This document shows, in pieces, positions 10,740 through 55,121 of a stretch of DNA of 64,000 nt. A program made the position numbers and the translations under genes. The stretch comes from Hyalangium minutum (lineage in GTDB: Bacteria > Myxococcota > Myxococcia > Myxococcales > Myxococcaceae). The notes under the pieces are model-generated. The model had not been told where the DNA came from. It saw only the letters and a program-made list of their open reading frames with translations, and did no database searches. Every line of letters begins with the position of its first letter. Position 1 is the stretch's first letter. The stretch is from the NCBI RefSeq assembly GCF_000737315.1, contig NZ_JMCB01000002.1, positions 558,001 to 622,000 on the forward strand, written 5' to 3'.

Positions 10740-10754
10740 AGCTCAGGTACAGAC

Positions 10755-11744: not shown

Positions 11745-11746
11745 CC

Positions 11747-15229: not shown

Positions 15230-15250
15230 GCGAGAGTCGCGGCTCGGCGT

Positions 15251-15922
15251 TCAGGGGCTCGGGCAGTGGGCGCCGGTGTCGATCCAGGCCTGGATCAGCT
15301 CTCCGAACGCCTTCTGAGTTCCTGGCACGGGCTGGAGGCCCAGACCCGGTGCCCAACCCCAGGCGACCAGGATGTCCTCCGCCATGTGGTGCTGGATCTC
15401 CGCGAGACTCTTTCCGCCGTTGCGCTTCGGATCCTTGAGCTGCTCGCAGATCTGTCCCAGCGGCCTCCCCAGCCATGCCATCTCGACGGGTGCGAGGGCC
15501 CACTTCGGGTTGCCCGGGATGCTTGGAAGCGTGGCCCCCACCGTGGGCGTGGTGGCCGCTTGATGGCACGCCGTGCACGGCAGGCCCGGGGGGCCGTGGC
15601 CGCTGGCGCCTCCCGAGACTGCCGGAACATGGACGTGCTGATCCATGCCCTGCCGAGGCCGGTCATCCGGCGGGTGGCAGTTGGTGCAGCGTGGGTGGGT
15701 GATCACCCGGCCCGCCTCGCGGAACAACGCAACCGAGCGCGCCTCCATGGGCGAGATGCCGGAGAACGCCGAGACCGGCTGGAGCTCCTCGCGTCCTTCC
15801 GGTTTGCTCTCGGGGCGGGCCGCTTGGCTCTGGGAACCGGAGGACTGCGGCGCGGCCTTGCTGCAGCCCGCTCCCATCAGGATCGCGCTCCAGGTCAGGA
15901 CGGTGGCGGCGAGACCTCGCAT
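15251..15922 (-). CDS. Diheme c-type cytochrome lipoprotein (family often linked to IorAB)
   Basis: From ATG 15922: ILMGAGC lipobox and two CxxCH motifs (CTNCH, CTACH). Confidence 0.75.
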   Translation of the reverse strand: MRGLAATVLTWSAILMGAGCSKAAPQSSGSQSQAARPESKPEGREELQPVSAFSGISPMEARSVALFREAGRVITHPRCTNCHPPDDRPRQGMDQHVHVPAVSGGASGHGPPGLPCTACHQAATTPTVGATLPSIPGNPKWALAPVEMAWLGRPLGQICEQLKDPKRNGGKSLAEIQHHMAEDILVAWGWAPGLGLQPVPGTQKAFGELIQAWIDTGAHCPSP

Positions 15923-16066
15923 AGGGGCCGACGGTGGCACAGCGCCTGGAGGCCAGCCACTGCGAGCAGCCCCATGCTCCGTGCCCCGCTCCCAGGGGTG
16001 TCCATGACTGGACGAAGGCTGTTGGCGTAAGGTCCAGCGCTCCTCTGTCTCGACGAAGAGCCGTCC

Positions 16067-17597: not shown

Positions 17598-20500
17598 CTA
17601 CGGCTTGGGCGCGATGGACACCTTCACGCCGTCCTGCCACGTCTTGTGCTCGTCCGCGTAATAAAGGTACGCGCGGCTGGCCGGGCCCGTGTAGGTGCCG
17701 GGCACCGCCGCCACCAGGGACAGCGGCACGTCCAGCTTCTTCCGCGGCTCCATGCCTCGCCAGTAGAGCACCACGTCGCGGCCGATCACCTCGTACGCGT
17801 CCACCGTCTTCTTCTTTACCAGCTCCTTGAGCTGGTCGTGCCGCACCTCGAGCCCGCCCGGCACTCCGAAGATGGCCACCGCCGTGGGCAGCTGCTCGTC
17901 TGTCTTGTTGGAGACCAGCACCCGCGCCTCGGTGGGCTCGCCCTCGGTCAGCGCGTTCTTCGCCAGCGAGACTTCCAGCGCCACCTTCGTCTCCGGCGAG
18001 CTGTCCGGCTTCAGCGCGTTGTAAGTCACTTCGATGGAGTAGGGCAGCTCCGCGCCGCCCTCCATCCGCAGCTCGATCTTCCGCTCGCCCGGGATGATGA
18101 GCTCGGCAATGTCCGGCAGCTTGATGGCCTCCTGCGCCGAGGGCTCGAACTTCACCGCGCTGCCCACCGGCTGGCCGTTCACGTACACCCGCACCGCGCC
18201 GCCCGAGCGCTTCGCCGCCCGCGCCTTGTCGTAGGCCACGATGGCGCGCAGCGCCAGCACCGTGCTCTGCGTGGAGCCGTACCGCCCACCGTCACACGAG
18301 CTCGCCAGGAACTTCATCGAGCGCTCCACGTTCGCCGCGAAGGCCGGGTCTCTCAGCCACGCCAGCGTTGCCAGAGCGGTGGTCTCGATTTGCAGCGTTT
18401 CGCCCATGCTGCCCACGATGGACTGCGTGCCGCCCTCCACCACGCCCTCCTTGCTCTGCTTGGCCGCCAGCCGCTCCATCAGCTTCTTGGCCTCCCCCCC
18501 CTCCCCGGACAGCGAGAGGGCGTTGGCCGCCAGCGCCACCACGTAGCTGTTCTTGCTGTCCGCCGCCGCCCGCCGCAGCGAGGACAGCTCCTTCGACAGC
18601 TCCTTCACCATGTCCGCCGTCTTCGGAGCGCTCTCCAGCAGCGCCCAGGTGATGTACGCGTTCGAGGTGTCGCGGTCCTCGATCCACACGTGCAGGGCGC
18701 GGCGCTTGCGCTCGAAGCCGCCCTTGCCGTCGCGCTGCTTGAGCAGCCACTCGCGCGAGCGGGTCAGCATCGCCGAGTCCACCTCGCGCACCTGCTGCAT
18801 GTCCCCGAAGTGCAGCAGGCCGAACGCCGTGAGCGCCTCGTGGCCCGGGGCCTCGCCGAACCACTCGTAGCCCTTCTCCTTCGTCTCGAAGCCCACCAGC
18901 CGCTGGTAGCCCCGCTCCAGTTTCTCGCGTGCCGAGGCCACCAGCTTCGGATCCACCCCGCTGTGCGTCTGGAAGTACTGCTGCGCCATCGTCATCGGGT
19001 ACGTCGTGGAGCTCGTCTGCTCGAAGCAGCCCGAGGGCTCCTGGATGAGCCGCGACAGGGACTCGGTCATGTTCGCCAGCGGGCTCGGGTACACCACGAC
19101 GGACGCCTTCACGCTGCCGCGCACCGTGTTGGCCGGCAGCGTCACCGTGTGCACCGCTGGCGCCTTCGCCGACACCCTCCCGCCGAACGACGCCGTGATG
19201 GGGAAGCCGTTGGGCTTGATGACCAGGGCCCGCTGCACCTTGTCCGCGTAGTCCCCCGCTGTCGCCGCCAGCGTCAGGTCGATGGGCTTGGACTCCTGGC
19301 CGATCTTCAGCTCGATGATGCGCCGGGCGCGCTCCTTCGCCGCCAGATCCACCGCGCCCAGCGTCGTGGCGCGCACGTCGCCCTTGAAGTCGAGCTTCAC
19401 GCCCACGCCCTTCAGCGCGGAGGACGTGCCGTTCACCAGCGCCACCGGCAGCTGGACCACGTCGCCCGAGGTGACCTCCAGGGGAATCTTGGGCTCCACA
19501 TAGAAGGGCTGCACGGACTCGATGGACGCCACCGCCGAGCCCAGCACGCCGTCGCTGCCCACCGCTCCGGCGAACGCCTTGAACGAGGTGACCGAGTCGT
19601 TCAGGCCGAACTGGACCTTGGCCTCGCCCGTCTTTGGGTTCGTGCGCACGCCCGCGTTCCAGTAGAGCGTCTCCGAGAAGTCCACGCGGTCTCCCGCCTT
19701 CCGGCCCGGCCGCACCGTGTGCGCGTATACGCGGAAGTAGACCTCCTGCTGGTCGTAGGGCATCAACTCATCGGCTAGGGCCTCATGATCCGCCGCGATC
19801 TTTCGCTCCAGCCGCTGAGCCCGGTTCGCCTTGCGCGCTGCCTCGGCCATGTTGCGGTCCTCTTGTTGGCGCACCGGCTGGGCTGGCATCACCTGGCCCA
19901 TGGGAGCAGGCGGAGGCGGAGGCGGAGCGGGCGGCGGCGGGGCAGGAGGTGCCACGGCCACGGGCGGAGCCGCCATGGCGGGCGCGGGCCTCGGAGGCGG
20001 CCTCCCGCCCCGAGGCGCGTCATCGAAGTCGGCGCCTGCGGCCGCGAGCTCCGCCACCACCGCGGAAGTCGGAGCAGGCACCTGGGGCACGCGCACCGCG
20101 AACACCCGGCGGGCCAGGTCGCCGTGCTGCTCCACGAAGCTCACGGGATTCGCCAGCGCGAACCGCCGCCAGCCCTGCGTGCCGAGCAGCAGGTCCACCG
20201 CCGGCTTCGCCTTCGGGTTCTTCTCGTCCAGGTACACCTGCGCGTCGGCCAGCTCCTTCACCTCGGGCTCCAGCAGCACCATCACCGGCAGCTGGGGCGC
20301 CTGGTCGCGCTTCTCGATGAGCTCCAGCACCGCGTCATCCGTCACGGTGAGCATCACCAAGGCGGACACGGGCTTGCCGTCCCGCGTCGTCCGGGCGGTG
20401 AGCTGCACCGAGTCCCCCGGCACGTAGCTGGCCTTGTCCAGCTTCACCTCGACGTCGAGCGCCTTGGCTGGCTGGCGGAACACGAGCCGCTCCGCCAGGG

Positions 20501-21737
20501 GGCGCCCGTCGTGGTCCCACACCGTGGCGATGAGCACGCCGTCCGCGTCCTTGGGATCCAGCGTCACCTGACCCTGCGAGCCCACCTCGGCGGACGCCAG
20601 CTCCACCTCCTGCTTGCTCAGCGTCACCTTCGCCTTGCTCAGCCCCGAGAGCGCCACGGAGAGCGTCACCGGCTTGCCCGCCGCCGCCACGTCCTCGCCC
20701 GAGCGCAGCACGGCGCCCTTCGCCTTCGCCTCCGGCAGCGGAAAGCGCTTCTGGATGCCCGAGGGCTGGTCGATGCGCAGCGCGTACTTCGCGCCCGTCT
20801 TCGGAGTGAACTCGAAGCGGCCGCGGCCCTCGTGCTCGGAGCGCACCGAGGCCACCACCTGCCCGCTGGCCAGATCCACCACCGCGCCCACCAGGTCCGC
20901 GGGCTTCTGCGCCGGCGTCTTCGCCTCGAAGTAGACGCGCGAGGGCAGCCCCGCCACCAGGTCGCCGCCCTCCGGGTAGAAGGACAGGTCCAACGTCTGC
21001 AGCAGGATGGGGATCGTCTTGGCCGCTGTCTCCACCACGCCGCCGTCCTCGATGGAGAAGGCCAGCGAGCCCTCGCCGCGCTCGATGCGGGTGGGTAGCT
21101 TGAAGCTCACCGTGCACAGCCCCTTGTCGTTCACGGTGCCGGACACCTGCGCCGCGGTAGCGCCGTCCACCAGGGCGATGGCGGTCACCTTGGCGCCCGC
21201 GGGCACTCCGCCCTCGGCGCGCTTCACGTCCAGCGTGGCCGTCACGGTGTCACCCGGGCCGTAGCCATCCCGGAGGAACTCGATCTGCGACTTGAGCCGT
21301 GGGGCCCGGTAGGCGCGCACGTCGAACTTCCGCTCCGCGGGCGCGTCTCCCGTCCAGGGGTAGTTGACCCTCAGCGTGTACTCGCCGCCGGGCTGATCCG
21401 CGGGGATGGTCCACGCGTAGCCCCACACCGAGTCCTCCGTGCTCACCCTCGCGGAGGTGACCACGTCGCCCTTGGGCCCGCGGATCTCCAGCTGCGCTTG
21501 ATAAGGAGACGGGTTCAGCGTGTGGCGCACCGCTTCGAGCATCAGGCCGCGCGCCAGCACCTGCTCTCCGGGGCGGTACAGCGGCTTGTCCGTGGAGACA
21601 TAGGTACGGAAGCGGTTCGCGCCTCCCAGCGAGCCCGCGTCCGCCTTCGTGACGAGTACCTGATGAAAGGTGACAGGGACGGCCAGGCTCACGGTGAGCA
21701 TTGCCACGAGCACACGGGGAGTGAGTTCAACGAGCAT
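17598..21737 (-). CDS. Secreted alpha-2-macroglobulin/thioester-containing protein (MG2, bait region, TED, receptor-binding-like domain)
   Basis: TDKPLYRPG (MG2), FSETLYWN, Pro-rich bait region, PSGCFEQ thioester motif, YGSTQST, C-terminal receptor-binding-like domain; N-terminal hydrophobic signal without a lipobox. Confidence 0.9.
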   Translation of the reverse strand: MLVELTPRVLVAMLTVSLAVPVTFHQVLVTKADAGSLGGANRFRTYVSTDKPLYRPGEQVLARGLMLEAVRHTLNPSPYQAQLEIRGPKGDVVTSARVSTEDSVWGYAWTIPADQPGGEYTLRVNYPWTGDAPAERKFDVRAYRAPRLKSQIEFLRDGYGPGDTVTATLDVKRAEGGVPAGAKVTAIALVDGATAAQVSGTVNDKGLCTVSFKLPTRIERGEGSLAFSIEDGGVVETAAKTIPILLQTLDLSFYPEGGDLVAGLPSRVYFEAKTPAQKPADLVGAVVDLASGQVVASVRSEHEGRGRFEFTPKTGAKYALRIDQPSGIQKRFPLPEAKAKGAVLRSGEDVAAAGKPVTLSVALSGLSKAKVTLSKQEVELASAEVGSQGQVTLDPKDADGVLIATVWDHDGRPLAERLVFRQPAKALDVEVKLDKASYVPGDSVQLTARTTRDGKPVSALVMLTVTDDAVLELIEKRDQAPQLPVMVLLEPEVKELADAQVYLDEKNPKAKPAVDLLLGTQGWRRFALANPVSFVEQHGDLARRVFAVRVPQVPAPTSAVVAELAAAGADFDDAPRGGRPPPRPAPAMAAPPVAVAPPAPPPPAPPPPPPAPMGQVMPAQPVRQQEDRNMAEAARKANRAQRLERKIAADHEALADELMPYDQQEVYFRVYAHTVRPGRKAGDRVDFSETLYWNAGVRTNPKTGEAKVQFGLNDSVTSFKAFAGAVGSDGVLGSAVASIESVQPFYVEPKIPLEVTSGDVVQLPVALVNGTSSALKGVGVKLDFKGDVRATTLGAVDLAAKERARRIIELKIGQESKPIDLTLAATAGDYADKVQRALVIKPNGFPITASFGGRVSAKAPAVHTVTLPANTVRGSVKASVVVYPSPLANMTESLSRLIQEPSGCFEQTSSTTYPMTMAQQYFQTHSGVDPKLVASAREKLERGYQRLVGFETKEKGYEWFGEAPGHEALTAFGLLHFGDMQQVREVDSAMLTRSREWLLKQRDGKGGFERKRRALHVWIEDRDTSNAYITWALLESAPKTADMVKELSKELSSLRRAAADSKNSYVVALAANALSLSGEGGEAKKLMERLAAKQSKEGVVEGGTQSIVGSMGETLQIETTALATLAWLRDPAFAANVERSMKFLASSCDGGRYGSTQSTVLALRAIVAYDKARAAKRSGGAVRVYVNGQPVGSAVKFEPSAQEAIKLPDIAELIIPGERKIELRMEGGAELPYSIEVTYNALKPDSSPETKVALEVSLAKNALTEGEPTEARVLVSNKTDEQLPTAVAIFGVPGGLEVRHDQLKELVKKKTVDAYEVIGRDVVLYWRGMEPRKKLDVPLSLVAAVPGTYTGPASRAYLYYADEHKTWQDGVKVSIAPKP

Positions 21738-22000
21738 GAGGGTTCCCGGAAGAGGAGAGAGACGAGCGTCGCCGAGGAACGGGCCAGCTCGCAGAAAGTT
21801 CTCAGCGGCCCGCTCTGGGCGAGTCCTTCGAATGCCCCTTGCTTCTCAAAGCATGGATTGGCATTTCTGTTTTAACTGGTTTCAGGGGCCAGGGTCCCGC
21901 ATGACGCCTTTTGCCTCGCGTGAGGCAATCTGCCTCAAACGCCCCAAGCCTCCCTCCAGACGCTGAGTGCCAGCGATTCCCGAGGCTTGCTGGGACAGGC

Positions 22001-22017
22001 TGTAAACACCTGATACA
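22001..22017. promoter_or_regulatory. Putative enhancer (UAS) for a sigma54 activator
   Basis: TGT-N11-ACA (TGTAAACACCTGATACA), about 90 bp upstream of a -24/-12 element. Confidence 0.4.
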
Positions 22018-22105
22018 TTTTTCGCATGAGGCTGTGAGACATGCATGTGCCAGCCCTTTGGGGAAGGTGCACGCCAACCGCCTGAATTACGAGGATTTTT
22101 GGGAT

Positions 22106-22121
22106 TGGCCCGGTCCCTGCT
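22106..22121 (+). promoter_or_regulatory. Putative sigma54 (-24/-12) promoter of the M4 protease gene
   Basis: TGGCCCGGTCCCTGCT: GG-N10-GC spacing, close to TGGCACG-N4-TTGCT, about 50 bp before the start. Confidence 0.55.
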
Positions 22122-22171
22122 TTGTCCGGAGCGTTCCATCGGCGCCTCGCCGTGGACAGGAGGATCCCCCA

Positions 22172-24079
22172 TTGGTTCGCAATCGCATCGTTGCTGCTCT
22201 GCTCGCCACTCTCCCGCTCGCTGCCTGCGAGATGGCTGACCCCGACACCGCTGCTCCGGGGACGGAGAAGGTAGATGAGCTGGCGATCGGAGATGTGCAG
22301 TCCGCGCTCGCGGCGCTGCCGAGCGCCCGCGTGCTGGGCACTCACGCCAACGGCGTTCCCTACATGCTCGACGGCCGCCTGGGCACGGCGTCCGGCTCGG
22401 TGCAGGGGCTGGCGGGGCTGAACGCGAGCGACCAGGTGAGCCAGGCGCTCGCGAGCATCGCTCCGGCGTTCCGGCTGAACGCTTCGGATCTGGCCGTGCG
22501 CCGCGTCCGCACGGATGAGCAGGGCGTCACCCACATCCGCTACGCGCAGCTGAAGAACGGCCTGCCGGTGGTGGGCGAGGAGCTCATCCTCCACGTGAAC
22601 AAGGACGGCGCCATCGTCGCGGCCAACGGCACGGCGCGCGACGGCGAGCTGGTTCCCTCCAAGCCGGCCATCTCCGCGCTGGCGGCGGTGTCCGCGGCCC
22701 TGCGCTCCACGGTGGGCCGTCACATCGAGACCGAGGGCGAGGCGCGCCTGGTGTACCTGCGCACCGGCTCGGACGAGAAGCTGAAGCTGGCCTACGAGCA
22801 GATGGTGGTGGGCGAGGGCCAGGAGCTGCCCATCCGCGAGCGCGTGTACGTGAGCGCGGCGGACGGCTCCATCCTGGAGCGCCGCACGGAGATCTTCGCG
22901 GCGCTCAACCGCGCGCTGTACAGCGCCAACAACGGCACCTCGCTGCCGGGCACGCTCAAGCGCTCCGAGGGCGGTGCGGCCACGGGTGACAACCACGTGG
23001 ACACCAACTACGCGAAGCTGGGCGGCACCTACAACTGCTACAAGAACAACTTCAACCGCGACTCGTACAACAACGCGGGCGCGCAGCTGAAGAGCACGGT
23101 GCACTACAGCAGCAACTACGTGAACGCCTACTGGAACGGCACCCAGATGGTGTACGGCGATGGCGACGGCGTGAACAGCACCCAGCTGGGCCTGGACGCG
23201 GACGTCACCACGCACGAGCTGACGCACGCGGTGACCAGCTCCGAGTCCAACCTCACGTACTCGGGTGAGTCCGGCGGCCTGAACGAGGCCATGTCCGACA
23301 TCTTCGGCGCCTACTGCGAGAGCTACGACAGCGGCACCTGGAGCACCGGCGCGGACATCTGGAAGGTCGGCGAGGACATCTGGACCCCGTCCACCGCGGG
23401 TGACGCGCTCCGCTACATGGACGACCCGGCCAAGGACGGCGTGTCCAAGGACTTCTGGGTGTCGGGCGTCGGCAGCGCGGACGTGCACTACACCTCGGGC
23501 ATCGCGAACCTGGCGTTCAAGCTGCTGTCCACGGGCGGTACGCACCCGCGCGGCAAGTCCACCGTCAGCGTGACGGGCATCGGCGTGCAGAAGGCCGGCG
23601 CCATCTTCTACAAGGCCAACGTGGACCTGATGACGGCCTCCACCACCTTCGCCCAGGCGAAGACGTACACGGAGCAGGCGGCGGCCTCGCTGGGCTACAC
23701 GACGGCGGAGCAGGCCTCGGTGTCTGCGGCGTGGCAGGCGGTGGGCGTGGGCGCGCCCATCACCGCCATCGCGCTGACCAACGGCGTGGCGAAGACCGGC
23801 CTGGCGGGCTCCACGGGCTCGCAGACGTTCTACTCGCTGGCGGTTCCCTCGGGGAAGGCCGTGACCTTCGCGATGAGCGGTGGCACGGGTGACGCGGACA
23901 TGTACGTGAAGTTCGGCGCGCTGCCGACCACCACCGCGTACGACTGCCGCCCGTACCTCTCCGGCAACGCCGAGACGTGCAACATCGCGGCGAAGACCAC
24001 CGCGGGCACGTTCTACATCATGCTGAACGGCTACAGCACGTACTCGGGCGTCTCGCTCAAGGGCTCCTACACGCCGTGA
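22172..24079 (+). CDS. M4 family metallopeptidase lipoprotein with a C-terminal PPC domain
   Basis: TTG start after a GGAGG SD; LPLAAC lipobox; HELTH, GGLNEAMSD, DVHYTSG; PPC domain (GGTGDADMYVK, YDCRPY). Confidence 0.92.
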   Translation: MVRNRIVAALLATLPLAACEMADPDTAAPGTEKVDELAIGDVQSALAALPSARVLGTHANGVPYMLDGRLGTASGSVQGLAGLNASDQVSQALASIAPAFRLNASDLAVRRVRTDEQGVTHIRYAQLKNGLPVVGEELILHVNKDGAIVAANGTARDGELVPSKPAISALAAVSAALRSTVGRHIETEGEARLVYLRTGSDEKLKLAYEQMVVGEGQELPIRERVYVSAADGSILERRTEIFAALNRALYSANNGTSLPGTLKRSEGGAATGDNHVDTNYAKLGGTYNCYKNNFNRDSYNNAGAQLKSTVHYSSNYVNAYWNGTQMVYGDGDGVNSTQLGLDADVTTHELTHAVTSSESNLTYSGESGGLNEAMSDIFGAYCESYDSGTWSTGADIWKVGEDIWTPSTAGDALRYMDDPAKDGVSKDFWVSGVGSADVHYTSGIANLAFKLLSTGGTHPRGKSTVSVTGIGVQKAGAIFYKANVDLMTASTTFAQAKTYTEQAAASLGYTTAEQASVSAAWQAVGVGAPITAIALTNGVAKTGLAGSTGSQTFYSLAVPSGKAVTFAMSGGTGDADMYVKFGALPTTTAYDCRPYLSGNAETCNIAAKTTAGTFYIMLNGYSTYSGVSLKGSYTP

Positions 24080-29115: not shown

Positions 29116-32100
29116 CTACGCGGGGGGAGGGGCGGAAGCCGTCAGCCCCTCGAAGTGGCCCTTGAGGCGTCCCGCGAAGCGGTCTGCCGCCTCGGGCGGG
29201 AGCTGGGAGCACGTCTGCAGGTGGAGGCTGCCGTCGAGCACGTAGCAGTAGACGGCGAGGGCCGGGATGTCCTGCAGCACCTTGACGCTCCGCATCTTGA
29301 AGCGCCCGAGGTTGGAGTCGAGAACGCCCAGGTTGACGATGAAGAGGCGGCCCGGCGCGGTGAACATCTCCCACACCCCGGGGATCCAGAGCAGCTTGGC
29401 TACCGCTCCAAAGCCGTCCGCCATCTTGTTGTAGTGCGCGGGCTCCATGCCCGCGTAGGTCCGCTTGTCGACATAGGCCTGGTGTTCCTGGTGGAAGTGG
29501 CGGGCCAGCTCCCAGAAGCCGGTCGCCGGGCCGACGTCCAGCACGAACTTCGGATAGGTGGCGTAGTACCCCAGCGTGTCAGTCGGGAGGTTGAGCAGCG
29601 GCCGTGCGTCGAACGAGCCCACGAGCATCAAGCGGTGGGGCTTGGGGGCCGGGCAGAAGAGCTCCCGCGCGGTGAGGCACAGCGCCGCCGACAGGGCTCC
29701 GGTCACCGAGCTCTGCTGGCGGGCCGCGGTGCCCAGCACCTGGCGCGTCGCGTCTCGGCCCATCGTCACCATGCGGGACGCGCCTGCCACCGAGATCTCC
29801 TGATCCCGCTTCTTCTGGGCTCCGAACGGCGCCTTGAACTTGTTCACCCGGAAGACCTCCAGGGGGGAGAGGACCTCCTGGCCGGTCTTGGCGACACCCT
29901 CCTCGGGGTGAAGGGCTACCGGAGCCAGGCCTCTCGCCGGTAGCTGGGAGAACAGGTCCTCGCGCGCGGCCGGGAGCGGCTGGGGCTTGACGTCCACAGG
30001 CGCCCCGGTCAGCAGCCGCTCGTAGATGTCGAACAGATCGCGCACCAGCATCACGAAGGCGTGAACCTCGAGGTAGCAGTGCCAGATGATGGGGATGACT
30101 TGGTAGGCCTCGGGCTCGCCCTTCGAGCGGATGAAGAGGATCTTCTTCTGCCCGGGGTCGCGCAGGTGGCGAGCGACGAGCTGCTCCAGCGGCTCCGTTC
30201 CCATCTCGGGGAGGAACACGAGCTCCAGCTGGCGGCCCGGCTGGTACTCCAGGAAGAACTCGCCGCGCTTCTTCTCGACGATGGAGGCACCCAGATAGGG
30301 GTAGCGCTTCTCCAGCAGCGCGGCCGCCTGCCGCATCCGCTCCGGATCGATGGAGCCCTCGATGTCCATCACGGGGTTGATGTGCAGGAGCCCCCGGCGG
30401 TTGGCCTGATAGACCAGGGACTCGAAGGCACCCAGGCGCCGCTGCACGGTCGCGCTCCAGGAGGCCAGCAGCGCGCCGTTCAGGAGCGGAGGGGCTTCCT
30501 GGCGGGTGGGCACGTCACCCTGGGGCTCGGTGGGCGCCTGCGCGATCGCCTGGGCGATCTTCTCGATCGTGTTGTGCTGGACCAGGAAGTTCGGGTCCAG
30601 CTTGAGCTGGAACTCTGTCTCCAGCTCCCGGAGGAGCGTGATGAACAAGATGGAGTCCAGCCCCAGGCTCCACAGGGTCGCCGTGGCGGGCAGCGGGCCC
30701 TCGGCCGACACGCTGATCCCCTGGACGATCTTCGAGACACGCTCGACGACGCCGGTGCGAGGACGGGCGCGCGGGGCGGGAGCCGCCGCTCCGGGCGTGA
30801 CGCCGTCCCGAGGAGCCTTCTGGGCCTCCCGGTTCTTCAGGCGGAGCTTGTCCACCTTGAAGGTGCCCGTCATCGGCATCTCGTCGATGAACTCCACCTC
30901 GACAGGGACCTTGTAGCCCGCCAGGTGTCCCCGGCAGAAAGCCGTCACCTCTCGCGGGGACAGGGAGTGTCCTGACCGGAGGCGGATGACCGCCTTGACC
31001 ACCTCTCCCGCCGTGGGGTTTGGGATGCCGTAGACTGCGGCCTGCTGCACCGCCGGATGGAGCGCGAGGACACGCTCGACCTCGCTCGGGTACACGTTCT
31101 CCCCGTACGAGATGATCATGTCCTTCTTGCGGCCCGCGATGGTCAGGTAGCCGTCGGGCCGGATCGTCGCGAGGTCTCCTGTCTTGAACCAGCCATCCTG
31201 GAAGGACTCCCGGGTCGCGGGGCCGTCATTGAAGTAGCCGTTGAAGACCGTCAGGCCGCGGATCCACACCTCCCCTGGCGTCTGGTTGTCGCGAGGCACG
31301 TCCGCGCCCCGGTCATCGACGATGCGCACCTCCATGAGCTTGAACGGCCGGCCGGAGGTGGCGATCAGCTCGAACTGCTCGGCGCGGGTGCGCTGGCGGT
31401 GTTCCTCTGAGAGGAGCGACATGGAGATCTTTCCGCAGCACTCCGTCATGCCGTAGGACATGAAGATCTCGCAGCCGAAGAGCTGGATGAGCTTGTCCAC
31501 CGAGGCGGCGTCGAGGGCCGAGCCTCCGCAGGAGAGGATCCGCAGCCGGCTGAAGTCGTGCGTTCCCACATCGGGGCTGTGGATGAGGAAGTGGGCCGCG
31601 GCCGCGGCGAGGTTCGTGCAGGTGATGCGCTCGCTGGCGAGCAGCCGCAAGAAGTGGGTGGGGTCCGGCTCCGAGACGATGACGTGCTGTCCACCCAGCC
31701 ACGTCAGTGCGTAGATCGCGAAGGCATCCACCACATGGTACATGGGCGAGAAGTGCCCCCAGACATCCTCGCCGGTGATGCGCATCTCCTCGGCGGTCGC
31801 GATGGCGTGGTGGAACACCTGGCGATGGGAGAGGAGCACGCCCTTGGGGAAGCCCGTCGTGCCGCTCGTGTAATAGAGCTGGAACGCATCGAACTCGGTT
31901 CCCCGGTTCGGGACGAAGGGAGCGGCTGAACCGGCGAGGGCCTCCTCGTAGCCGCGCGAAGTGGCGAGCTTCGAGGCCTGCTCGGGGAGCGTCTGGCGCT
32001 CCGGGCCGCTGTCGACCCACAGGACGCCGCTGAGGTTCAGCCCTCCGAGCCCCACGGCTTCTGACAGGGTCTGCGCGAAGTCCGCCGAGGTGATGATCCA

Positions 32101-35100
32101 GCTCACGCCCGACTGCTGGAAGATGTGGTGCACCTCTCTCGCGGTGAGCCTCACGTTGACGTTCAGCACGACGGCTCGCAGCCCGGACGCAGCGAAGTGC
32201 GTCTCGATGACCTCCGAGCGGTTGCGGAGCATCACCCCCACGACCTTGCCGGGGCCCACGCCTTGCTCGCGGAGGAACTGCGCGAGCCGCGACGCCCGGG
32301 CATGCAGCTCGCCATAGGTGTGCTGCCGGGCGCCGTCCCGGATCGCCACACGCTCCGCGAAGTGCTCCTTCGCACGCTCGATGACGGCCCACATGTCCGC
32401 GGGCGGTCCCTCGATGGAAGGGAGCTGAGGAGTCTTTCTGGGCACGGGGACTGCCGCCGACGTGAGCGCCCCTCGGAAGAAGTATGACTTCTTCTCGGGA
32501 TCGACGAGGCACTCGATGAGCGTGCTCTGCCCCGCCTCCCAGGCGGCACGCGCGGCCTGAACGCACGGGGCCAGCTCCTCGGGGGTGGACACCGAGGCGA
32601 AGCGCAGGCCCGGGTGCCGGTCCTTGAACGCGCTCAGATCGAACTCGGCGAGCTGGGTGCAGACCTCCGGCCGGTTCGTCGCCCGTTGAATGTCGCCGAT
32701 CATTCCCAGGCGGCGGTCCCGGAGCACGACGGTGATGATGGCCGGGGCGCCGGGCTCGCCCAGCAGGCCCTTGAGCCCCGTCATCAGGAACGCGCCATCG
32801 CCTACGAACGACACCACGGGTACCGACGGATGCGACCAGGCGGCGCCAATCGCGGCGGGGACCGAGTACCCCATGCTGTTGTAGTCCGCAGGGCAGAGGA
32901 ACCGGTCCGGCGCGGTGAGCCGGAGCGCCTCGATCGCGTGAATCGTCCCATTGCCCGAGTCCGCGCAGAAGATCGTCTCGGGAGGCAGCTGTGCCTGGAC
33001 CGTGCGGACGAGCTCATAGGGGTCCAGCCCGCTCCCATGCTGCTTCCGGCTGCGGAGGTCCTCTTCCACCCAGGCGTGGGCCGCCCGGAGCCGCTCCACG
33101 AGGCCATCCGCACGGCGCGGGAAGTCACCGCGGTAATGCCTGTCGAGGTGCTTCAGCAAGGCCTGGAGGAAGGCCTTGGCATCCGCAGTGATACCGATCG
33201 CGGCCGCCGCCTTGTTGGGGACCGCCGGGTCGATGTCCACGTGGAAGCAGTACGCCGGGAAGCGGGCACGGTAATGAGCACTTCCCAGCTCACTGAGCCG
33301 TGCTCCGAGGATGAGCGCGCCGTCGCACTCCTCCGCGAGGGTCTTCATGGGGGGAGGGGACAGGGGACCGAAGCCGCTCCACAACCACAAGGGGTCCGTC
33401 TCGGGGAACACGCCCTTGCCGGAGAGCGTCGAGGCGACGACGGCGCCTGTCCGGTGAGCCAGCTCCACGAGCTCGGCGGAGCCCTCGCGTGCGCCGCGTC
33501 CCACGAAGATCACGGGCTGCTTCGCGCGGATGAACATCTGCGCCACGGCATCCAGCGCGGCCTCCGTGGGAGTGGCGGCTGGAGCCTCGGGTTGGACCTT
33601 CAAGGCGACAGCGGACGCAGCGGTGGACTCCGCCGTGAAGGTGGCCGGGCACACGAGACAGACAGGGCCCGGAGCCGAGGCCGTGCTGCGCTGGACCGCT
33701 TCCTTCAGGGCGCCCGCCAGCTCCTCGGCCGAGGCGATGACTGTCACCGACTTCGACAGGTGTCTCAGGGAGCCCAGCCACGGCTCGGGAGGAGAGGAGG
33801 CCACGATCAGGACGACGAGGGGAACCTGGTCGAGGTGGGCCTCACCGACTCCCGACAGGACCGAGGAGAGCGCCCACTCTTCCGGGAGGATGAGGGCAGC
33901 GGGCTGCTTGGAGGAGCGTGAGGCTCCGTCCGCGACAAATCCCAGGTTCTGGTCATGGCGCACGGCCTTGACCGGCACTCCGTCCGAGGACAGGGCCGCG
34001 GCCGCGGCCTGCAGCCGTCCGTCCCCGGCGATGAACACGGAGCCAAGCCCGCTGCCCTGGACGCCTTGCTTGAGGGCTGAGAGCCACGAGGCACTGAGGG
34101 CGATGGGGCTGGGAGCCACCACCCGGGGCGCGGCCTGCTCGACCTCGCAGATGACGACCTCGGGAGTGCGCATCGTCTCCACGAGCTCCCGAGCCAGAGA
34201 GGCATCGTCCTGGGCTCGTAGGAGCCGGACGCGGGTCAGCTTCGCGATGAGCTCGACGGTGCCCTCTGGAGCGGAGCCGCGCTCGACCCGAATCACGAGG
34301 GGGAGGCGCCGCTCGGCCGCCAGGGTGAGTTCGGGCGCGAAGGCCATGAGCGAGTCGGCATCCGTGAGCGCGATCGCAAGCTGCTGCGAGAACGCGGCGC
34401 CCAACGCCAGTGCCACCGCGCCTCGGCGAGAGGGGACGCCCTGGTGGTTCACATCGCTGACGGCGTAGAGCCCACTGCGGCTCACGGCAGCCGCACACGT
34501 CTCCAGCGCGCGGGCCAGCTCCGGAGTGAGGTCGGCGTTCTTCCACTCGGGAGTCTTCGCGGAGGGGCTCACGGCCCGTGGGGCGCCGCGGAAGACCGAT
34601 GGACGCCGGAGCAGGTGCATGGGCACCTCGAGCGCACACGGACCGGGCTCGCCGCCCAGCGCTGTCTCCACGAGCCGTGCCACGACTTCGTGCACATCAT
34701 CGGTCTCGGTCAGGCGGTGGGTCGCCTTGCAGAGCGGCGCGAGGACGCCCAGGTTGTCCACATCATGCAGTTGGTACGAGCGGCCCTCGTCCCGCGCGCA
34801 GCCCGTCGTGAGGACGAGGAGCGGCGTCCGGGTGCGAGACGCGAACTCGATGCCCGGCAGTGCGTGGGTGATGCCGGGGCCGCCGATGACGTTGACGCAG
34901 CCGAGCTGGCCGCTGCTCTGGTACTGCCCTGCGGCGAGGTACGCCGCGCTCGCCTCGTTGGCGATGAGCACGGGCTCCAGCACGCCGCGCCCGAGCATCT
35001 CGTACAGGCGCAGGTTCTGGACTCCCGGAATCCCAAAGCAGCGAGTGATTCCCGCGGCCCGGAGTGCCATTCCGAGGAGCTGGGTGGTGTCGTAGGTCTC

Positions 35101-35193
35101 GTTGGGCTGGGGCTGCTCGAACAGCTCACTTTGTATCCGCATGCTTCGCCTCGCATCTCCCATGCTTCCCGCCATGCCGGGAGAGATAACCAT
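29116..35193 (-). CDS. Multidomain biosynthetic protein: duplicated ThDP-dependent (ALS-like) unit, acyl-adenylate ligase, carrier protein, condensation/PapA5-like acyltransferase
   Basis: FGIPG and NEASA (PYR), GDGAFLM (PP), YYTSGTTGFPKG, YGMTE, TGD and GRKKD (ANL ligase), LGLDSIL (Ppant serine), and a C-terminal CAT-fold-like region (WHCYLEV, VNLG). 2025 aa uninterrupted; the start could also be 35163 or 35141. Confidence 0.85.
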   Translation of the reverse strand: MVISPGMAGSMGDARRSMRIQSELFEQPQPNETYDTTQLLGMALRAAGITRCFGIPGVQNLRLYEMLGRGVLEPVLIANEASAAYLAAGQYQSSGQLGCVNVIGGPGITHALPGIEFASRTRTPLLVLTTGCARDEGRSYQLHDVDNLGVLAPLCKATHRLTETDDVHEVVARLVETALGGEPGPCALEVPMHLLRRPSVFRGAPRAVSPSAKTPEWKNADLTPELARALETCAAAVSRSGLYAVSDVNHQGVPSRRGAVALALGAAFSQQLAIALTDADSLMAFAPELTLAAERRLPLVIRVERGSAPEGTVELIAKLTRVRLLRAQDDASLARELVETMRTPEVVICEVEQAAPRVVAPSPIALSASWLSALKQGVQGSGLGSVFIAGDGRLQAAAAALSSDGVPVKAVRHDQNLGFVADGASRSSKQPAALILPEEWALSSVLSGVGEAHLDQVPLVVLIVASSPPEPWLGSLRHLSKSVTVIASAEELAGALKEAVQRSTASAPGPVCLVCPATFTAESTAASAVALKVQPEAPAATPTEAALDAVAQMFIRAKQPVIFVGRGAREGSAELVELAHRTGAVVASTLSGKGVFPETDPLWLWSGFGPLSPPPMKTLAEECDGALILGARLSELGSAHYRARFPAYCFHVDIDPAVPNKAAAAIGITADAKAFLQALLKHLDRHYRGDFPRRADGLVERLRAAHAWVEEDLRSRKQHGSGLDPYELVRTVQAQLPPETIFCADSGNGTIHAIEALRLTAPDRFLCPADYNSMGYSVPAAIGAAWSHPSVPVVSFVGDGAFLMTGLKGLLGEPGAPAIITVVLRDRRLGMIGDIQRATNRPEVCTQLAEFDLSAFKDRHPGLRFASVSTPEELAPCVQAARAAWEAGQSTLIECLVDPEKKSYFFRGALTSAAVPVPRKTPQLPSIEGPPADMWAVIERAKEHFAERVAIRDGARQHTYGELHARASRLAQFLREQGVGPGKVVGVMLRNRSEVIETHFAASGLRAVVLNVNVRLTAREVHHIFQQSGVSWIITSADFAQTLSEAVGLGGLNLSGVLWVDSGPERQTLPEQASKLATSRGYEEALAGSAAPFVPNRGTEFDAFQLYYTSGTTGFPKGVLLSHRQVFHHAIATAEEMRITGEDVWGHFSPMYHVVDAFAIYALTWLGGQHVIVSEPDPTHFLRLLASERITCTNLAAAAAHFLIHSPDVGTHDFSRLRILSCGGSALDAASVDKLIQLFGCEIFMSYGMTECCGKISMSLLSEEHRQRTRAEQFELIATSGRPFKLMEVRIVDDRGADVPRDNQTPGEVWIRGLTVFNGYFNDGPATRESFQDGWFKTGDLATIRPDGYLTIAGRKKDMIISYGENVYPSEVERVLALHPAVQQAAVYGIPNPTAGEVVKAVIRLRSGHSLSPREVTAFCRGHLAGYKVPVEVEFIDEMPMTGTFKVDKLRLKNREAQKAPRDGVTPGAAAPAPRARPRTGVVERVSKIVQGISVSAEGPLPATATLWSLGLDSILFITLLRELETEFQLKLDPNFLVQHNTIEKIAQAIAQAPTEPQGDVPTRQEAPPLLNGALLASWSATVQRRLGAFESLVYQANRRGLLHINPVMDIEGSIDPERMRQAAALLEKRYPYLGASIVEKKRGEFFLEYQPGRQLELVFLPEMGTEPLEQLVARHLRDPGQKKILFIRSKGEPEAYQVIPIIWHCYLEVHAFVMLVRDLFDIYERLLTGAPVDVKPQPLPAAREDLFSQLPARGLAPVALHPEEGVAKTGQEVLSPLEVFRVNKFKAPFGAQKKRDQEISVAGASRMVTMGRDATRQVLGTAARQQSSVTGALSAALCLTARELFCPAPKPHRLMLVGSFDARPLLNLPTDTLGYYATYPKFVLDVGPATGFWELARHFHQEHQAYVDKRTYAGMEPAHYNKMADGFGAVAKLLWIPGVWEMFTAPGRLFIVNLGVLDSNLGRFKMRSVKVLQDIPALAVYCYVLDGSLHLQTCSQLPPEAADRFAGRLKGHFEGLTASAPPPA

Positions 35194-35199
35194 GTCCCG

Positions 35200-35409
35200 T
35201 CAGGGGACCTCTTGTCGTGCGAACCCACGGAAGACCCCGGTGGGTCTCCCCTGCTCATCCCACGAGACCACGTGAAGGGTCTGCCGGCCGTCCCGGGTAC
35301 CCTTCCTTCGGGCGAAGACCTGCACCGGTCCTCGGGGGACAGCGTAGAGATCCGCGGCCTCGATCTCCAGGGGCAGCAAGGTCCTCGCGCAGGACATCAC
35401 TCCCTTCAC
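35200..35409 (-). pseudogene. Remnant of the C-terminal half of a PKS dehydratase (hot-dog) domain
   Basis: LLPLEIEAADLY...VQVFAR...HVVSWDEQGRP..VFRGF matches the PKS-DH C-terminal pattern; the catalytic His and Asp portion is absent. Confidence 0.55.
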
Positions 35410-36092
35410 CAGGCGATGGGCCCGCCCCGGAAGTCGAGGAAGGTTCCGCTGTCCTGAAGGGTGAGCCGGTCGATGAGGCCGATGAGGCCCGCGGCGGACT
35501 CGGCCACGGGTGTCGGAGCCTCCGAGCCGCCCATGTCGGTCTGCACCCAGCCGGGGCTGAGCACCACGGCGATGAGTCCCTCGGCGCGCAGGTCCTGCGC
35601 CAGCGAGCGTGTCGCCATGTTCAGCGCGGCCTTGGACATGCGGTAGCCATAGCTGCCGCCGGAGGTGTTATCGGCGATGGAGCCCAGCCCTGAGGTGATG
35701 TTGGCGATCTTCGCACCTGCGGAGCGGCGGAGCATGGGCAGCAGGGCGGAGGTGACGCGCAGCGCGCCGAGCGCGTTCACCTGGAAGGTCCGGGCGGCGT
35801 CATCCAGATCGAGCGCTTCGAGGCTGTCGGGCCGGCTTCTCACGCCCGCGTTGTTGATGAGCACATCGATGGGCTCGGAGACGGTGGACGCGAACGTGCG
35901 GACACTGGCCTCCAGAGACACATCGCAGGCGTGGAGTTGGAGCCGGCCGCCCGAGGGAGCCAGGAGGGCCGCGAGCTCGCGGGCGCGTCCGGGTGTCCGG
36001 GCACCGGCGTAAACGGAGTCACCGCGGGCGAGGTACTGACGGGTCAGCTCCAGTCCAATGCCGCGGTTGGCTCCAGTGATGACGATCTTCAT
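35406..36092 (-). CDS. Short-chain dehydrogenase/reductase, CsgA (C-factor)-like
   Basis: MKIVITGANRGIG, NNAG, YRMSKAALNM, PGWVQTDMGG; about 228 aa, matching CsgA p25 by eye along its length. Confidence 0.88.
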   Translation of the reverse strand: MKIVITGANRGIGLELTRQYLARGDSVYAGARTPGRARELAALLAPSGGRLQLHACDVSLEASVRTFASTVSEPIDVLINNAGVRSRPDSLEALDLDDAARTFQVNALGALRVTSALLPMLRRSAGAKIANITSGLGSIADNTSGGSYGYRMSKAALNMATRSLAQDLRAEGLIAVVLSPGWVQTDMGGSEAPTPVAESAAGLIGLIDRLTLQDSGTFLDFRGGPIAW

Positions 36093-36481
36093 GGCGGCGA
36101 TCTTACTGATGCCCTGGAGGTAGAGGTGCCCAAAGTGCTCACGCTGGCTCGCCCCCTCGTCCTCCATGCTCACCATGCGAGCGAGTGCAAAATACTTCGC
36201 CACCTTCGCGTCATGGACGCTTCAGGGAGCGCTGCGGAATGACACTGGGAGACGGACGGCACGGCGGCGATGAAGGGCAACGATCCGGATGCATGCGCGC
36301 TCACGTACCCCCGCGTCCCTGAAAGGTTCCCAGAATTGAAGCGGGAGTTCCCTGTCTCTCTCGATGAGCGAGTTTCCAGGTTCACCGAAGGGGTAGGGGA
36401 CAGGGGCTTACTTTGGGTTCGGCGCCATGCGAGGCGGGTTGTGCTAGGACTTGGGTGAGCGACCGCTGCCCACCGTACACC

Positions 36482-44207: not shown

Positions 44208-44558
44208 TTACCCGGGGTCTAGAGCCCAGGTGCCTTCTTCCCAGCGCTTTAAGGCCTCTGAGGCTGAGAAGGAAACCAGTCCTTCTCCCTGAGCCGCGTC
44301 TTTCAACACTGCTTGGGCTTCTTCAGTTCGATGACGAAGGAGGAAGGCTGCTGCCTTGACTCGAACGTCCAGGCGGGAATGCGTGAACAGAGCCGCGAGC
44401 GCATCTCTTCCGGAGTTGCCCTGCGCGCACAGCTTGTCGAATGCCGCATTCACCTGCTTGGCGTGTTTGTTGGCGGTCTTCGAGTCTCCTCGGCTGATGG
44501 CATCCGTCTGAGCAGCGGCGTGGCGGGCAAACGCCTCCACGAGTTTCTCAAGGGTCAT
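44208..44558 (-). CDS. Putative immunity protein (DUF2019-like, HEAT-like helices)
   Basis: MTLEKLVEAF...DVRVKAAAFLL; ATGA-coupled to the toxin stop. Confidence 0.7.
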   Translation of the reverse strand: MTLEKLVEAFARHAAAQTDAISRGDSKTANKHAKQVNAAFDKLCAQGNSGRDALAALFTHSRLDVRVKAAAFLLRHRTEEAQAVLKDAAQGEGLVSFSASEALKRWEEGTWALDPG

Positions 44559-45865
44559 TGTCCAACTCCCCAGGTTCCATTCCGGATCTGCTCGAGGGCC
44601 TGCAATCCGAACTGGCGCTGGGTTCCATAGGATTGCGTGCTCAGCCACTGCCGCACCGTCAGGCTCCTTGAGCCAGTGATTTCCTGCTGGATTGACGAGT
44701 AGAACCCACTGACACGGGTGTGTAGGCCTTGTTCCAGCGGGATGACGTTTTCGGTGTTGTGCAGGGCATGAGGACCGAACCGGTCCACGTTACCTGGTGT
44801 TTGCTCGACGATGTGGTGCCACTGCTTGCCTTTTCCTGCAGAGCCCAAGGCACTCCTGAGGCCGCTGTACGAGCCCCACGATCGGAAAGCAGAAGGATGC
44901 TCCCCGGCTGCAGCTACGCTACCGCCCATACTCTGGGCCGTCATGGCGACGGCTGTTGCAGGCAGGGAGATGACGATGGTGCTTCCGACAACGGCCACCG
45001 AAGTCACCTGTCCCACGTTCGCGAGGTTGAGCCCCAGCCGCGCGGCCCCAGCCGCCGCTTCCGAGCAGCTGGGCAGCATCGGAAGGCGGGAGGCCAGCAA
45101 GACGGCGCCCCCAGTCATTCCCTGGCTCACCACCAGCGTCACTGCGAGCACGAGGACACGTGCGACCTTGGGGCCGATCCTCTTCGCAAAGCGCTGGCTT
45201 GCGTGCTCCAACTCCTTCCATGTCGTGGCTCGGTCGGTGGTCCACTTCAACTCATGGCTCGCGTCGACCACCTCCAGAAAGGTCTCCGCGCCCAGGTAGA
45301 CCAACAGCAGCACGGAGATGAGAGCCGCCGCCTTGGTGAAGACGGGCTCGGGGTTGGCTGCCAAGACGGCCCAGGTGATGAGCCCCGTCGCAATGACGGT
45401 GTAGAAGAGCTGAGGCGCCAGGGTGTCTTGCACCGCTTGGGAGATGCTCTCCTTCAGGGGATCCAGTGACAGGCCCAGAGCAACCCCCAGTTTGTCCCAC
45501 TCGCTCAGGCCCATCATGTCATCGAGCAAAGAGAGGCAATGTTCGCTGCGCTGGCCGGGCTCACAAAGACCGCCGAAGCTCTTGCTCATGAGGCGCTGCC
45601 AACGAGTGTCTTCTCTGGGGCCTGGGTGGGAGGCGCGCACCAGCCAGCCTTGCTGTGCAGGACGGAGCTTCAGCGGCGCGTTCAGTACCAACTGTGTCAG
45701 CGACTCCTCGAACGCTTCTGTGTCCACCTTCACGGACTGCTGCGAGGAGGACGGTCTGTACTCCCAGCGCGGACCCTGGCCCGTGTCGAGGCGAACCAGA
45801 GGTGGGGTGGCGCACGCGGAGAGCAGAGCCAGGAGAAGGACTGCAGCAGTCAGCCGAGATGCCAT
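44555..45865 (-). CDS. sitA5: SitA5-type polymorphic lipoprotein toxin with a C-terminal His-rich nuclease-like domain
   Basis: LLSAC lipobox, VRLDTGQG N-terminal motif, hydrophobic middle region, C-terminal WHHIVEQ...HNTEN...LH. Confidence 0.7.
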   Translation of the reverse strand: MASRLTAAVLLLALLSACATPPLVRLDTGQGPRWEYRPSSSQQSVKVDTEAFEESLTQLVLNAPLKLRPAQQGWLVRASHPGPREDTRWQRLMSKSFGGLCEPGQRSEHCLSLLDDMMGLSEWDKLGVALGLSLDPLKESISQAVQDTLAPQLFYTVIATGLITWAVLAANPEPVFTKAAALISVLLLVYLGAETFLEVVDASHELKWTTDRATTWKELEHASQRFAKRIGPKVARVLVLAVTLVVSQGMTGGAVLLASRLPMLPSCSEAAAGAARLGLNLANVGQVTSVAVVGSTIVISLPATAVAMTAQSMGGSVAAAGEHPSAFRSWGSYSGLRSALGSAGKGKQWHHIVEQTPGNVDRFGPHALHNTENVIPLEQGLHTRVSGFYSSIQQEITGSRSLTVRQWLSTQSYGTQRQFGLQALEQIRNGTWGVGQ

Positions 45866-47211: not shown

Positions 47212-50527
<3,316 letters not shown>

Positions 50528-55116: not shown

Positions 55117-55121
55117 CGCTT

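Follow-up and report, generated by a model that had tools for sequence, protein, structure and literature searches.

What reaction would require a thiamine diphosphate (ThDP) carboligase, an adenylate-forming ligase, a carrier protein and an acyltransferase-like domain to be joined in one polypeptide? This question is raised by a single gene of Hyalangium minutum, located in a window of 64,000 nucleotides (the whole stretch of DNA that was analysed: contig NZ_JMCB01000002.1, positions 558,001 to 622,000). A preliminary description, made from the letters of the DNA, had reported one unbroken open reading frame (ORF) here, and this was confirmed at 29116..35193; the strand, which had not been given, is the minus strand, on which all features of the gene described below lie. 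The fusion is real, intact and very rare; it unites domain types that are each known, in an arrangement that was not found described. We tentatively favour, with confidence a little short of even, a self-contained linear enzyme, in which the product of the ThDP domains would be the acid that the ligase loads onto the carrier and the C-terminal domain would release it.

The ORF comprises 2,025 codons plus stop with no internal stop, and its GC content by codon position (0.69/0.48/0.89) matches that of other real genes in the window, which has a GC content of ~69%. The true start is likely Met18 (ATG at 35142), because the sequence GAGG is found 6 nt 5' of this codon and the NCBI model of the orthologue WP_158620025.1 begins at the equivalent Met. 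Collinear, full-length orthologues with 78% identity are present in Corallococcus sicarius and Corallococcus terminator, and a further orthologue, a 2,003-aa protein, was found in a separate Logan (read-archive) assembly. Neither an assembly chimera nor hidden stops, both of which had been raised as possible objections, account for the gene: a chimera is ruled out because collinear orthologues (~78% in the two Corallococcus species, plus the one in the further assembly) occur in separate assemblies, and four independent sequences of the gene contain no stops or frameshifts. Compared with the orthologues, the catalytic domains are 81–89% identical and the linkers 7–50%. The proposed four-part architecture (ThDP, ligase, carrier, acyltransferase-like end) is likewise borne out by Pfam calls, motifs and profile matches; Pfam calls were judged against the gathering score, and all of them except PapA_C lie above it.

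The N-terminal region (aa ~30–900) had been described as a ThDP enzyme resembling acetolactate synthase (ALS). Its kinship with ThDP enzymes of the acetohydroxyacid synthase (AHAS) type stands, but it is not a plain ALS and contains an internal duplication. Profile comparisons and alignments indicate the order Pyr1-PP'-Pyr2'-M-PP, where Pyr denotes pyrimidine-binding, PP diphosphate-binding and M middle domains. Among solved structures, BbmA/CsmA (PDB 8x3x and 8x3z; E 7.7e-46) is the best match to the ThDP part, followed by AHAS (~1e-32). Pfam recognizes TPP_enzyme_N in two stretches, the better one at 38–147 within Pyr1 (aa 32–200; 34594..35100), a predicted live pyrimidine-binding domain that aligns to BbmA residues 5–178 and carries the catalytic Glu80 in the motif LIANEASAAY, aligned to the HE of BbmA. 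The next domain, PP' (aa ~215–350; 34144..34551), appears to be a truncated and degenerate diphosphate-binding copy, with TDA in place of GDG and VE at the NN/xD position. It is followed by the second Pyr-like domain, Pyr2' (aa ~365–525; 33619..34101), which is covered by the other TPP_enzyme_N stretch and in which Asp413 (RHDQ) occupies the position of the catalytic Glu. With hhalign, using profiles drawn from the seven-member family alignment A3, PP' (aa ~257–335) was matched to the C-terminal PP domain with a probability of 97.3% (E 1.9e-11) and Pyr2' (aa 376–525) to Pyr1 with a probability of 98.1% (E 6.4e-14), while three control pairs gave 3% or less. A second TPP_enzyme_C stretch is also called by Pfam in the relatives L086 and L087.

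The remaining two domains complete a conventional chain. The middle domain M (aa 541–700; 33094..33573; TPP_enzyme_M at 548–679, 97.5 bits) aligns to BbmA from residue 194, and the predicted live diphosphate- and Mg-binding domain PP (aa 735–905; 32479..32991), identified by TPP_enzyme_C at 745–895 and by the BbmA alignment, contains the motifs VGDGAFLMTG at 797–806 (GDG at 798–800) and VVLRDRRLGMI at 822–832. The metal-ligand (NN) position in this domain reads R825-D826, an xD variant of the GDG...NN motif; Asp is chemically able to bind the metal at this position. N79-E80, G798, D826 and G830 are invariant in alignment A3. BbmA aligns to aa 32–199 and then to aa 541–830, skipping ~340 residues, and plant AHAS aligns only from aa 376 onward; because these alignments start at different Pyr regions, two Pyr-like domains must be present. 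The cofactor motifs are divided between the ends of the unit, with the Glu found only in Pyr1 and GDG and D826 only in the last PP domain. Membership in the ThDP decarboxylase/AHAS-like superfamily is indicated by the Pyr Glu, the PP motif variant and the three-domain Pyr-M-PP chain, all of which are present.

Conservation follows the same division. In the comparison with the orthologues, Pyr1, M and PP are the best-conserved stretches of the whole protein (85–89% identity, with 87% for Pyr1 and 88–89% for M), whereas the degenerate PP' and Pyr2' reach 62–76% (62–68% for PP'). An AlphaFold 2 (AF2) model of aa 1–930 (pLDDT 76, pTM 0.81) superposes on complete AHAS monomers with TM scores of 0.74–0.81 (normalized to the target); carboxyethylarginine synthase (CEAS) is also among its fold matches. 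Enzymes of this superfamily build each active site at a subunit interface, with the Pyr domain contributed by one chain and the PP domain by its partner. Given the duplication detected by hhalign, the pTM of 0.81 and this placement of the active sites, we infer that the ThDP unit is a single-chain pseudo-dimer, in which Pyr1 and the C-terminal PP domain would form the live site and PP' and Pyr2' a dead structural copy.

The ThDP unit is followed by an ANL adenylate-forming ligase of the acyl-CoA-synthetase type (aa 936–1460; 30814..32388; Pfam AMP-binding at 939–1321, 259 bits, and AMP-binding_C at 1371–1446). The core motifs are intact, namely YYTSGTTGFPKG, YGMTE, WFKTGD, GRKKDMII and the Lys in PMTGTFKVDK, and those quoted in the preliminary description were located where it had placed them (YYTSGTTGFPKG at 1107–1118, YGMTE at 1247–1251 and GENVYPSEVE within 1354–1373). 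The best model is NCBIfam PRK06187 (438 bits) and the nearest structures are the feruloyl-/fatty-acyl-CoA synthetases 8weu/8wev, then 1ult (a Thermus long-chain fatty-acyl-CoA synthetase) and FadD13; MenE models and structures, as well as oxalate-CoA ligases, are also among the matches. These class matches give no specific substrate call. A canonical A-T-C unit (adenylation, thiolation, condensation) with an amino-acid adenylation domain of a nonribosomal peptide synthetase (NRPS) was considered and rejected: acyl-CoA synthetases score best and NRPS A domains far lower. Only ~40 residues separate the end of the ANL domain (~1460) from the start of the carrier, or thiolation, domain (~1480–1500). 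This domain (aa ~1480–1555; 30529..30756) is canonical by its Pfam PP-binding match (1501–1550; 37.6 bits against a cut-off of 20.8), and Ser1514, the last residue of LGLDS at 1510–1514 (codon 30652–30654), is the predicted phosphopantetheine site, as had been proposed. No ketoreductase (KR) or ketosynthase (KS) was matched in the protein by Pfam.

The C-terminal ~460 residues had been described as a domain resembling the fold of chloramphenicol acetyltransferase (CAT). Weak but collinear matches to PapA5 and to condensation domains agree with this, although the family-model match remains below the cut-off: Pfam PapA_C at 1811–1914 scores 23.7 bits against 30, and the Pfam Condensation model found no match in the protein. 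PapA5 (1q9j) is the top PDB match of the domain (aa ~1568–2015; 29149..30492) with both the single sequence and the profile (E 0.011–0.03), the alignment setting IIWHCYLEVH on YLHHCMADGH of PapA5, and a second PapA5 entry gives a weak collinear match over the C-lobe, the lobe that PapA_C also matches. The profile of the domain additionally matches, weakly and usually at profile positions ~35–175, the N-lobes of dozens of unrelated NRPS condensation domains, and in the alignments displayed these matches are in register with HHxxxD. Where HHxxxDG is expected, the protein has W1704-H1705-CYLEV (30061–30084), so that Trp stands for the first His, Glu for Asp and Val for Gly, while the second His is kept; the three orthologues have this motif unchanged. 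An AF2 model of the domain, built from a three-sequence alignment, has a mean pLDDT of 38.6. From these comparisons we conclude, at the superfamily level only, that the domain is probably a condensation/PapA5-superfamily acyltransferase with a catalytic His.

How widespread is this arrangement? An exhaustive HMMER search of 1.84 billion representatives was made with aa 826–2025 as the query, and the best 150 matches were inspected for ThDP-type domains. A full-length relative was found in one cluster only, that of Corallococcus sicarius, whose members are labelled 'AMP-binding protein' or 'hypothetical protein', and a word-index search with the C-terminal domain returned one 302-aa metagenome fragment with 68% identity. 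Hence, as judged by this search, the version in which the ThDP-ANL pair is followed by a carrier and a condensation-type domain (T-C) is confined to one cluster among the 1.84 billion representatives and is very rare. The ThDP-ANL pair itself is found elsewhere. ThDP-type domains precede the same ANL subfamily (38–45% identity) in 10 of the 150 best matches, which originate from Cymbomonas tetramitiformis, Chromera velia, a picozoan, metagenomes and an AT-rich bacterium; most of the ten show the duplicated arrangement and some have a degenerate ThDP part, and in the algal relatives P0029, P0040 and P0092 the Glu and GDG motifs are lost. When metagenome relatives of the ThDP part were inspected, all six carried the ThDP-ANL fusion. 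Downstream of the ThDP domains, every relative scanned continues as ANL-KR-ACP (acyl carrier protein), usually followed by KS modules, with one contig (L087) stopping within the ANL domain.

A second compact version with another off-loading domain is P0143 (L081, 5468–12004; L089), a 2,178-aa bacterial ThDP-ANL-KR-ACP-hexapeptide transferase protein. The bacterium has a very low GC content (26% in L089) and the neighbouring genes include ankyrin-repeat genes, and the fusion gene is located beside a prolyl-tRNA synthetase (ProRS) gene, outside any obvious cluster. A Hyphomicrobiaceae metagenome-assembled genome (MAG; L069) that matches aa 40–1455 was rejected as a fusion: a ThDP enzyme (543 aa) and an ANL ligase (544 aa), both distantly similar, are encoded there by two genes on one strand that are separated by a 587-aa ORF (9719–15928). 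These two genes may represent the unfused counterpart of the fused pair. No paper on ThDP-adenylation-carrier fusions or on ThDP domains in the loading modules of polyketide synthases (PKSs) was found in the literature, and, in agreement with the preliminary description, no characterized enzyme with the architecture was found.

We favour the linear enzyme because the ThDP-ANL pair is conserved as a unit, including in relatives without an ester-forming domain after the carrier. Since no joining domain is present in these relatives, the ThDP product would have to enter through the ANL ligase, and the KR straight after the loader points to a keto group in the loaded unit. An α-hydroxy-β-keto acid is the likeliest product because the title of PDB entry 8x3x, which holds the nearest relative of solved structure, reads 'ThDP-dependent HKA synthase', where HKA presumably stands for α-hydroxy-β-keto acid. 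In the proposed mechanism, a 2-oxo acid would be decarboxylated at the site formed by Pyr1 and the C-terminal PP domain, and the resulting carbanion would be added to a second carbonyl compound to give a product that retains a carboxylate, most likely an α-hydroxy-β-keto acid of the acetolactate type. The ANL ligase would next adenylate this carboxylate and load it as a thioester onto Ser1514, which would also shield a product that easily loses CO2, and the condensation/PapA5-like domain, with His1705 as the general base, would transfer the acyl group to a hydroxyl or amine acceptor. There is precedent for such an order of events: in MenD followed by MenE, and in CEAS followed by β-lactam synthetase, the carboxylate of the ThDP product is adenylated next. 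What the sequences themselves show is which domains are present, that the cofactor and catalytic motifs are intact and that the ThDP-ANL pair is conserved; the substrates, the order of steps, the geometry of the pseudo-dimer and the acceptor are inferred.

Several observations weigh against the linear enzyme. All members of the ThDP-ANL family are biochemically uncharacterized, and the ANL ligase is of a generic type, its best models, the fatty-acid and feruloyl ligases, being silent on a tertiary α-hydroxy acid as substrate. The KR found in every relative scanned is missing here, and the chemistry after loading may thus differ. PapA5-type domains typically O-acylate alcohols, which suits a convergent scheme equally well, and in Corallococcus the gene closes an operon of KS, chain-length factor (CLF) and dehydratase (DH) genes resembling a polyunsaturated fatty acid (PUFA) synthase, which could supply a separate acid.

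The convergent scheme is the one given in the preliminary description and was modelled on the biosynthesis of cyanobacterin, in which the ligase CybC, the ThDP carboligase CybE, forming an α-hydroxy-β-keto acid, and the O-acylating enzyme CybF act as separate proteins (PMC8777810). That account of the established pathway was correct, and homologues of cybE and cybF occur in myxobacteria (PMC8777810). Applied to a single chain, the acyloin or α-hydroxy-β-keto acid made by the ThDP domains would stay free, the ANL ligase would load another acid of the fatty, aryl or cinnamoyl type, and the C-terminal domain would O-acylate the acyloin to an ester and perhaps to a butenolide or furanolide. The closeness of the C-terminal domain to PapA5, an O-acyltransferase that draws its acyl group from a carrier, fits the formation of an ester, the best ANL models are for fatty-acid and feruloyl-CoA ligases, and the PUFA-synthase-like PKS and the phosphopantetheinyl transferase (PPTase) gene that precede the Corallococcus orthologues are a possible source of the acid. 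However, CybF is annotated as a 3-oxoacyl-ACP synthase of the KAS III type (PMC8777810), rather than a condensation-like enzyme, and no ketoacyl-synthase/thiolase-fold domain was found by Pfam in the protein or in neighbouring genes; nor is there a PKS within the 64 kb of the Hyalangium-type window. Nor does the scheme account for the occurrence of the same ThDP-ANL pair at the head of ThDP-ANL-KR-ACP-KS proteins, which lack a joining domain and favour linear loading instead. For the T-C variant it is thus a possible but less economical reading, which we consider unlikely, though deserving of serious weight.

Compared with the linear enzyme, a scheme in which the ThDP site acts on the carrier is quite improbable. 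Here, the ANL ligase would load either a 2-oxo acid or some small acid such as oxalate, formate or a 2-hydroxy acid, and the ThDP site would act on the thioester: it would join a decarboxylated donor to the carrier-bound 2-oxoacyl group or perform C1 chemistry of the type known from 2-hydroxyacyl-CoA lyase (HACL) and oxalyl-CoA decarboxylase (OXC). Both of these enzymes match Pyr1 strongly (E ~3e-28) and are among the fold matches, oxalate-CoA ligases are among the ANL matches, and A-KR-T modules loading 2-oxo acids occur in depsipeptide synthetases, which would explain the KR of the relatives. Yet it is the HKA synthase BbmA, not HACL or OXC, that matches best over both ThDP halves, and the ThDP unit comes first in the domain order. 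Less probable still is that the ThDP unit supplies a plain acid, one carbon shorter than its substrate, by oxidative decarboxylation of the pyruvate-oxidase type (or by decarboxylation followed by oxidation) for loading by the ANL ligase. This would preserve the linear ThDP-to-ANL logic of the family, and pyruvate oxidases match aa 489–897 (E ~5e-29) and are among the fold matches, but the carboligases BbmA and AHAS outscore the oxidases and no keto group would be provided for the universal KR of the scanned relatives. Finally, it is very improbable that the ThDP region serves as a scaffold or regulatory module without catalysis, or that the gene is a decaying relic, which would leave an ANL-T-C acyl-transfer enzyme or a non-working protein: clear degeneration is seen in two of the five ThDP-type domains, the three algal relatives named above have lost Glu and GDG and the gene lies in a variable island, but Glu80, GDG and D826 are intact here, Pyr1, M and PP are the most conserved domains and all four independent sequences are free of stops and frameshifts.

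No partner gene of the fusion is conserved between genera. The Hyalangium and Corallococcus loci share no gene besides the fusion gene itself, and this lack of a conserved partner fits a stand-alone enzyme fed by 2-oxo acids of primary metabolism. In H. minutum, a short-chain dehydrogenase/reductase (SDR) gene (35406..36203, minus strand; Pfam adh_short, 120 bits) is located 212 bp upstream on the same strand. Whether it acts as a ketoreductase in trans is uncertain; it lies within the same island as the fusion gene and is not found beside the Corallococcus orthologues. That it is a displaced cis-KR was rejected, as it has no specific similarity to the KR of the relative P0029. The segment at 29.1–47.2 kb of the window has no counterpart in Hyalangium gracile (L082) or in a related MAG (L083), in both of which the flanks are syntenic, and it contains the fusion gene, the SDR gene, genes for an AsmA-like protein of 1,251 aa and a PD40/TPR protein of 1,167 aa, and small genes. 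The fusion gene hence looks to be part of a strain-specific island of ~18 kb, in which no tRNA or integrase was seen. A TPP riboswitch was not found, and Rfam, tRNA and promoter/terminator scans gave no result.

Synteny with the window extends, in both H. gracile and the MAG, to genes for an aminotransferase, an M4 peptidase and an α-2-macroglobulin; in H. gracile it also includes the exopolysaccharide genes, and in the MAG the metallophosphoesterase gene. The aminotransferase, a class-III enzyme encoded downstream of the fusion gene, is of the β-alanine--pyruvate-transaminase type, is 90–92% identical in other Hyalangium genomes and counts as a conserved neighbour with a housekeeping role. 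The aminotransferase and the metallophosphoesterase, which is likewise encoded downstream, were rejected as pathway partners: in both genomes the aminotransferase gene occupies the equivalent, conserved neighbourhood although the fusion gene is missing, and in L083 it is followed there by the metallophosphoesterase gene.

The Corallococcus orthologue stands at the end of a run of closely packed genes that share its direction; in order, these encode AAT-DH, KS-KS, KS-KS-DH, PPTase and DH proteins. The PUFA-synthase-like set 5' of the orthologue (L001, 1–9130; L080, 1–9942) comprises an AAT-DH-DH protein, two KS-KS (KS/CLF-type) proteins, a PPTase and a free DH, and extends past the DNA examined. 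Directly 3' of the gene, an AHH-family nuclease toxin gene is followed by an Imm11/SUFU immunity gene (L001, 16411–19086; L080, 16414–19038), and in C. terminator a DDE transposase is encoded ~2.3 kb downstream (L002, 18385–19554). At 44208–45865 of the H. minutum window (minus strand) lie two such genes. An ORF of 436 aa encodes a lipoprotein-like product that ends in '...GKQWHHIVEQTPGNVDRFGPHALHNTENVIPL', with a WHH/HNH-like toxin motif and no Pfam match; it is followed by a 146-aa DUF2019 protein, and the local GC content falls to 0.63. The two may form a polymorphic toxin-immunity pair. As toxin/immunity-type genes are found nearby in each genus, the fusion gene borders toxin-type variable DNA in both.

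Other features of the window lie apart from these subjects. An exopolysaccharide-type cluster at 49181–63617, syntenic with H. gracile, encodes a Wzz/GNVR/P-loop tyrosine-kinase-type protein, at least four GT4 glycosyltransferases, an FkbM methyltransferase and a GT2-methyltransferase fusion. Two genes for secreted M4 (thermolysin-like) peptidases and one for a bacterial α-2-macroglobulin of 1,415 aa are found at 1–1561 and 17598–24079 and adjoin a Ser/Thr kinase gene. The minus strand at 5811–9224 encodes an FHA-TonB_C protein and, directly 3' of it, a small protein with a RelA/SpoT (alarmone synthetase-like) domain.

What would the linear enzyme mean beyond this locus? With rather less than even confidence, we propose that the duplicated ThDP unit is a new assembly-line loading domain, a single-chain pseudo-dimeric carboligase that makes its own α-hydroxy-β-keto-acid starter from two 2-oxo acids of primary metabolism for the fused ligase and carrier. 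Members of the family would be found in myxobacteria, in AT-rich (possibly intracellular) bacteria and in the giant PKSs of many algae, and the myxobacterial ThDP-ANL-T-C protein would be the smallest and most tractable of them. No earlier description of a ThDP carboligase as the first domain of a carrier-protein assembly line was found. If the linear reading is true, two 2-oxo acids would be coupled by a C–C bond and trapped as a thioester before CO2 is lost, a new route to a starter unit, and the unannotated N-termini of many giant algal PKSs would be accounted for; the products of such synthases include ecologically important compounds. A single-chain pseudo-dimer, if confirmed, would show an obligately dimeric cofactor enzyme working as one unit of a megasynthase. 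The main value of the gene is as a tractable bacterial entry to a widespread, uncharacterized ThDP-ANL loading unit, since a bacterial enzyme of ~2,000 residues is of a size that allows expression and assay, unlike the algal proteins of 4,000–5,000 residues.

The individual parts of the protein can each be set against a known system. BbmA/CsmA and AHAS, the best matches of the ThDP unit in sequence and fold, have the three-domain composition (Pyr, M and PP) in common with it, as well as a catalytic Glu and a GDG motif, but they are stand-alone enzymes of ~550–600 aa that form intermolecular dimers. In the H. minutum protein, by contrast, the Pyr and M domains are separated by a degenerate PP' and a second Pyr-like domain, xD takes the place of NN in the metal motif, and ANL-T-C is fused to the unit. 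The MenD/MenE and CEAS/β-lactam synthetase pairs, of which MenE and CEAS are among the matches, likewise activate the carboxylate of a ThDP product with ATP in the next step, but they are separate enzymes of different pathways without a carrier domain. PapA5 and NRPS C domains are collinear with the C-terminal domain and in register at HHxxxDG, whose second, catalytic His this domain retains, and in A-T-C units a condensation-type domain also directly follows the carrier; the domain described here is, in contrast, very divergent, with WHxxxEV instead of HHxxxDG and a score below the Pfam cut-off. The cyanobacterin pathway also combines an acid-activating ligase, a ThDP carboligase and an acylating enzyme, a likeness of logic only: it uses three separate proteins and CoA in place of a carrier domain, and CybF, which also cyclizes, is not homologous to the C-terminal domain. 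The giant ThDP-ANL-KR-ACP(-KS...) proteins known from algae, protists and a few bacteria, among them KAK3277853.1 of Cymbomonas tetramitiformis, Cvel_3347 of Chromera velia and P0143, combine an equally duplicated ThDP unit directly with a ligase of the same ANL subfamily. In these proteins, none of which is characterized, the pair is followed by KR and ACP domains and then by PKS modules or a hexapeptide transferase, whereas the H. minutum protein lacks the KR and ends in a condensation/PapA5-like domain.

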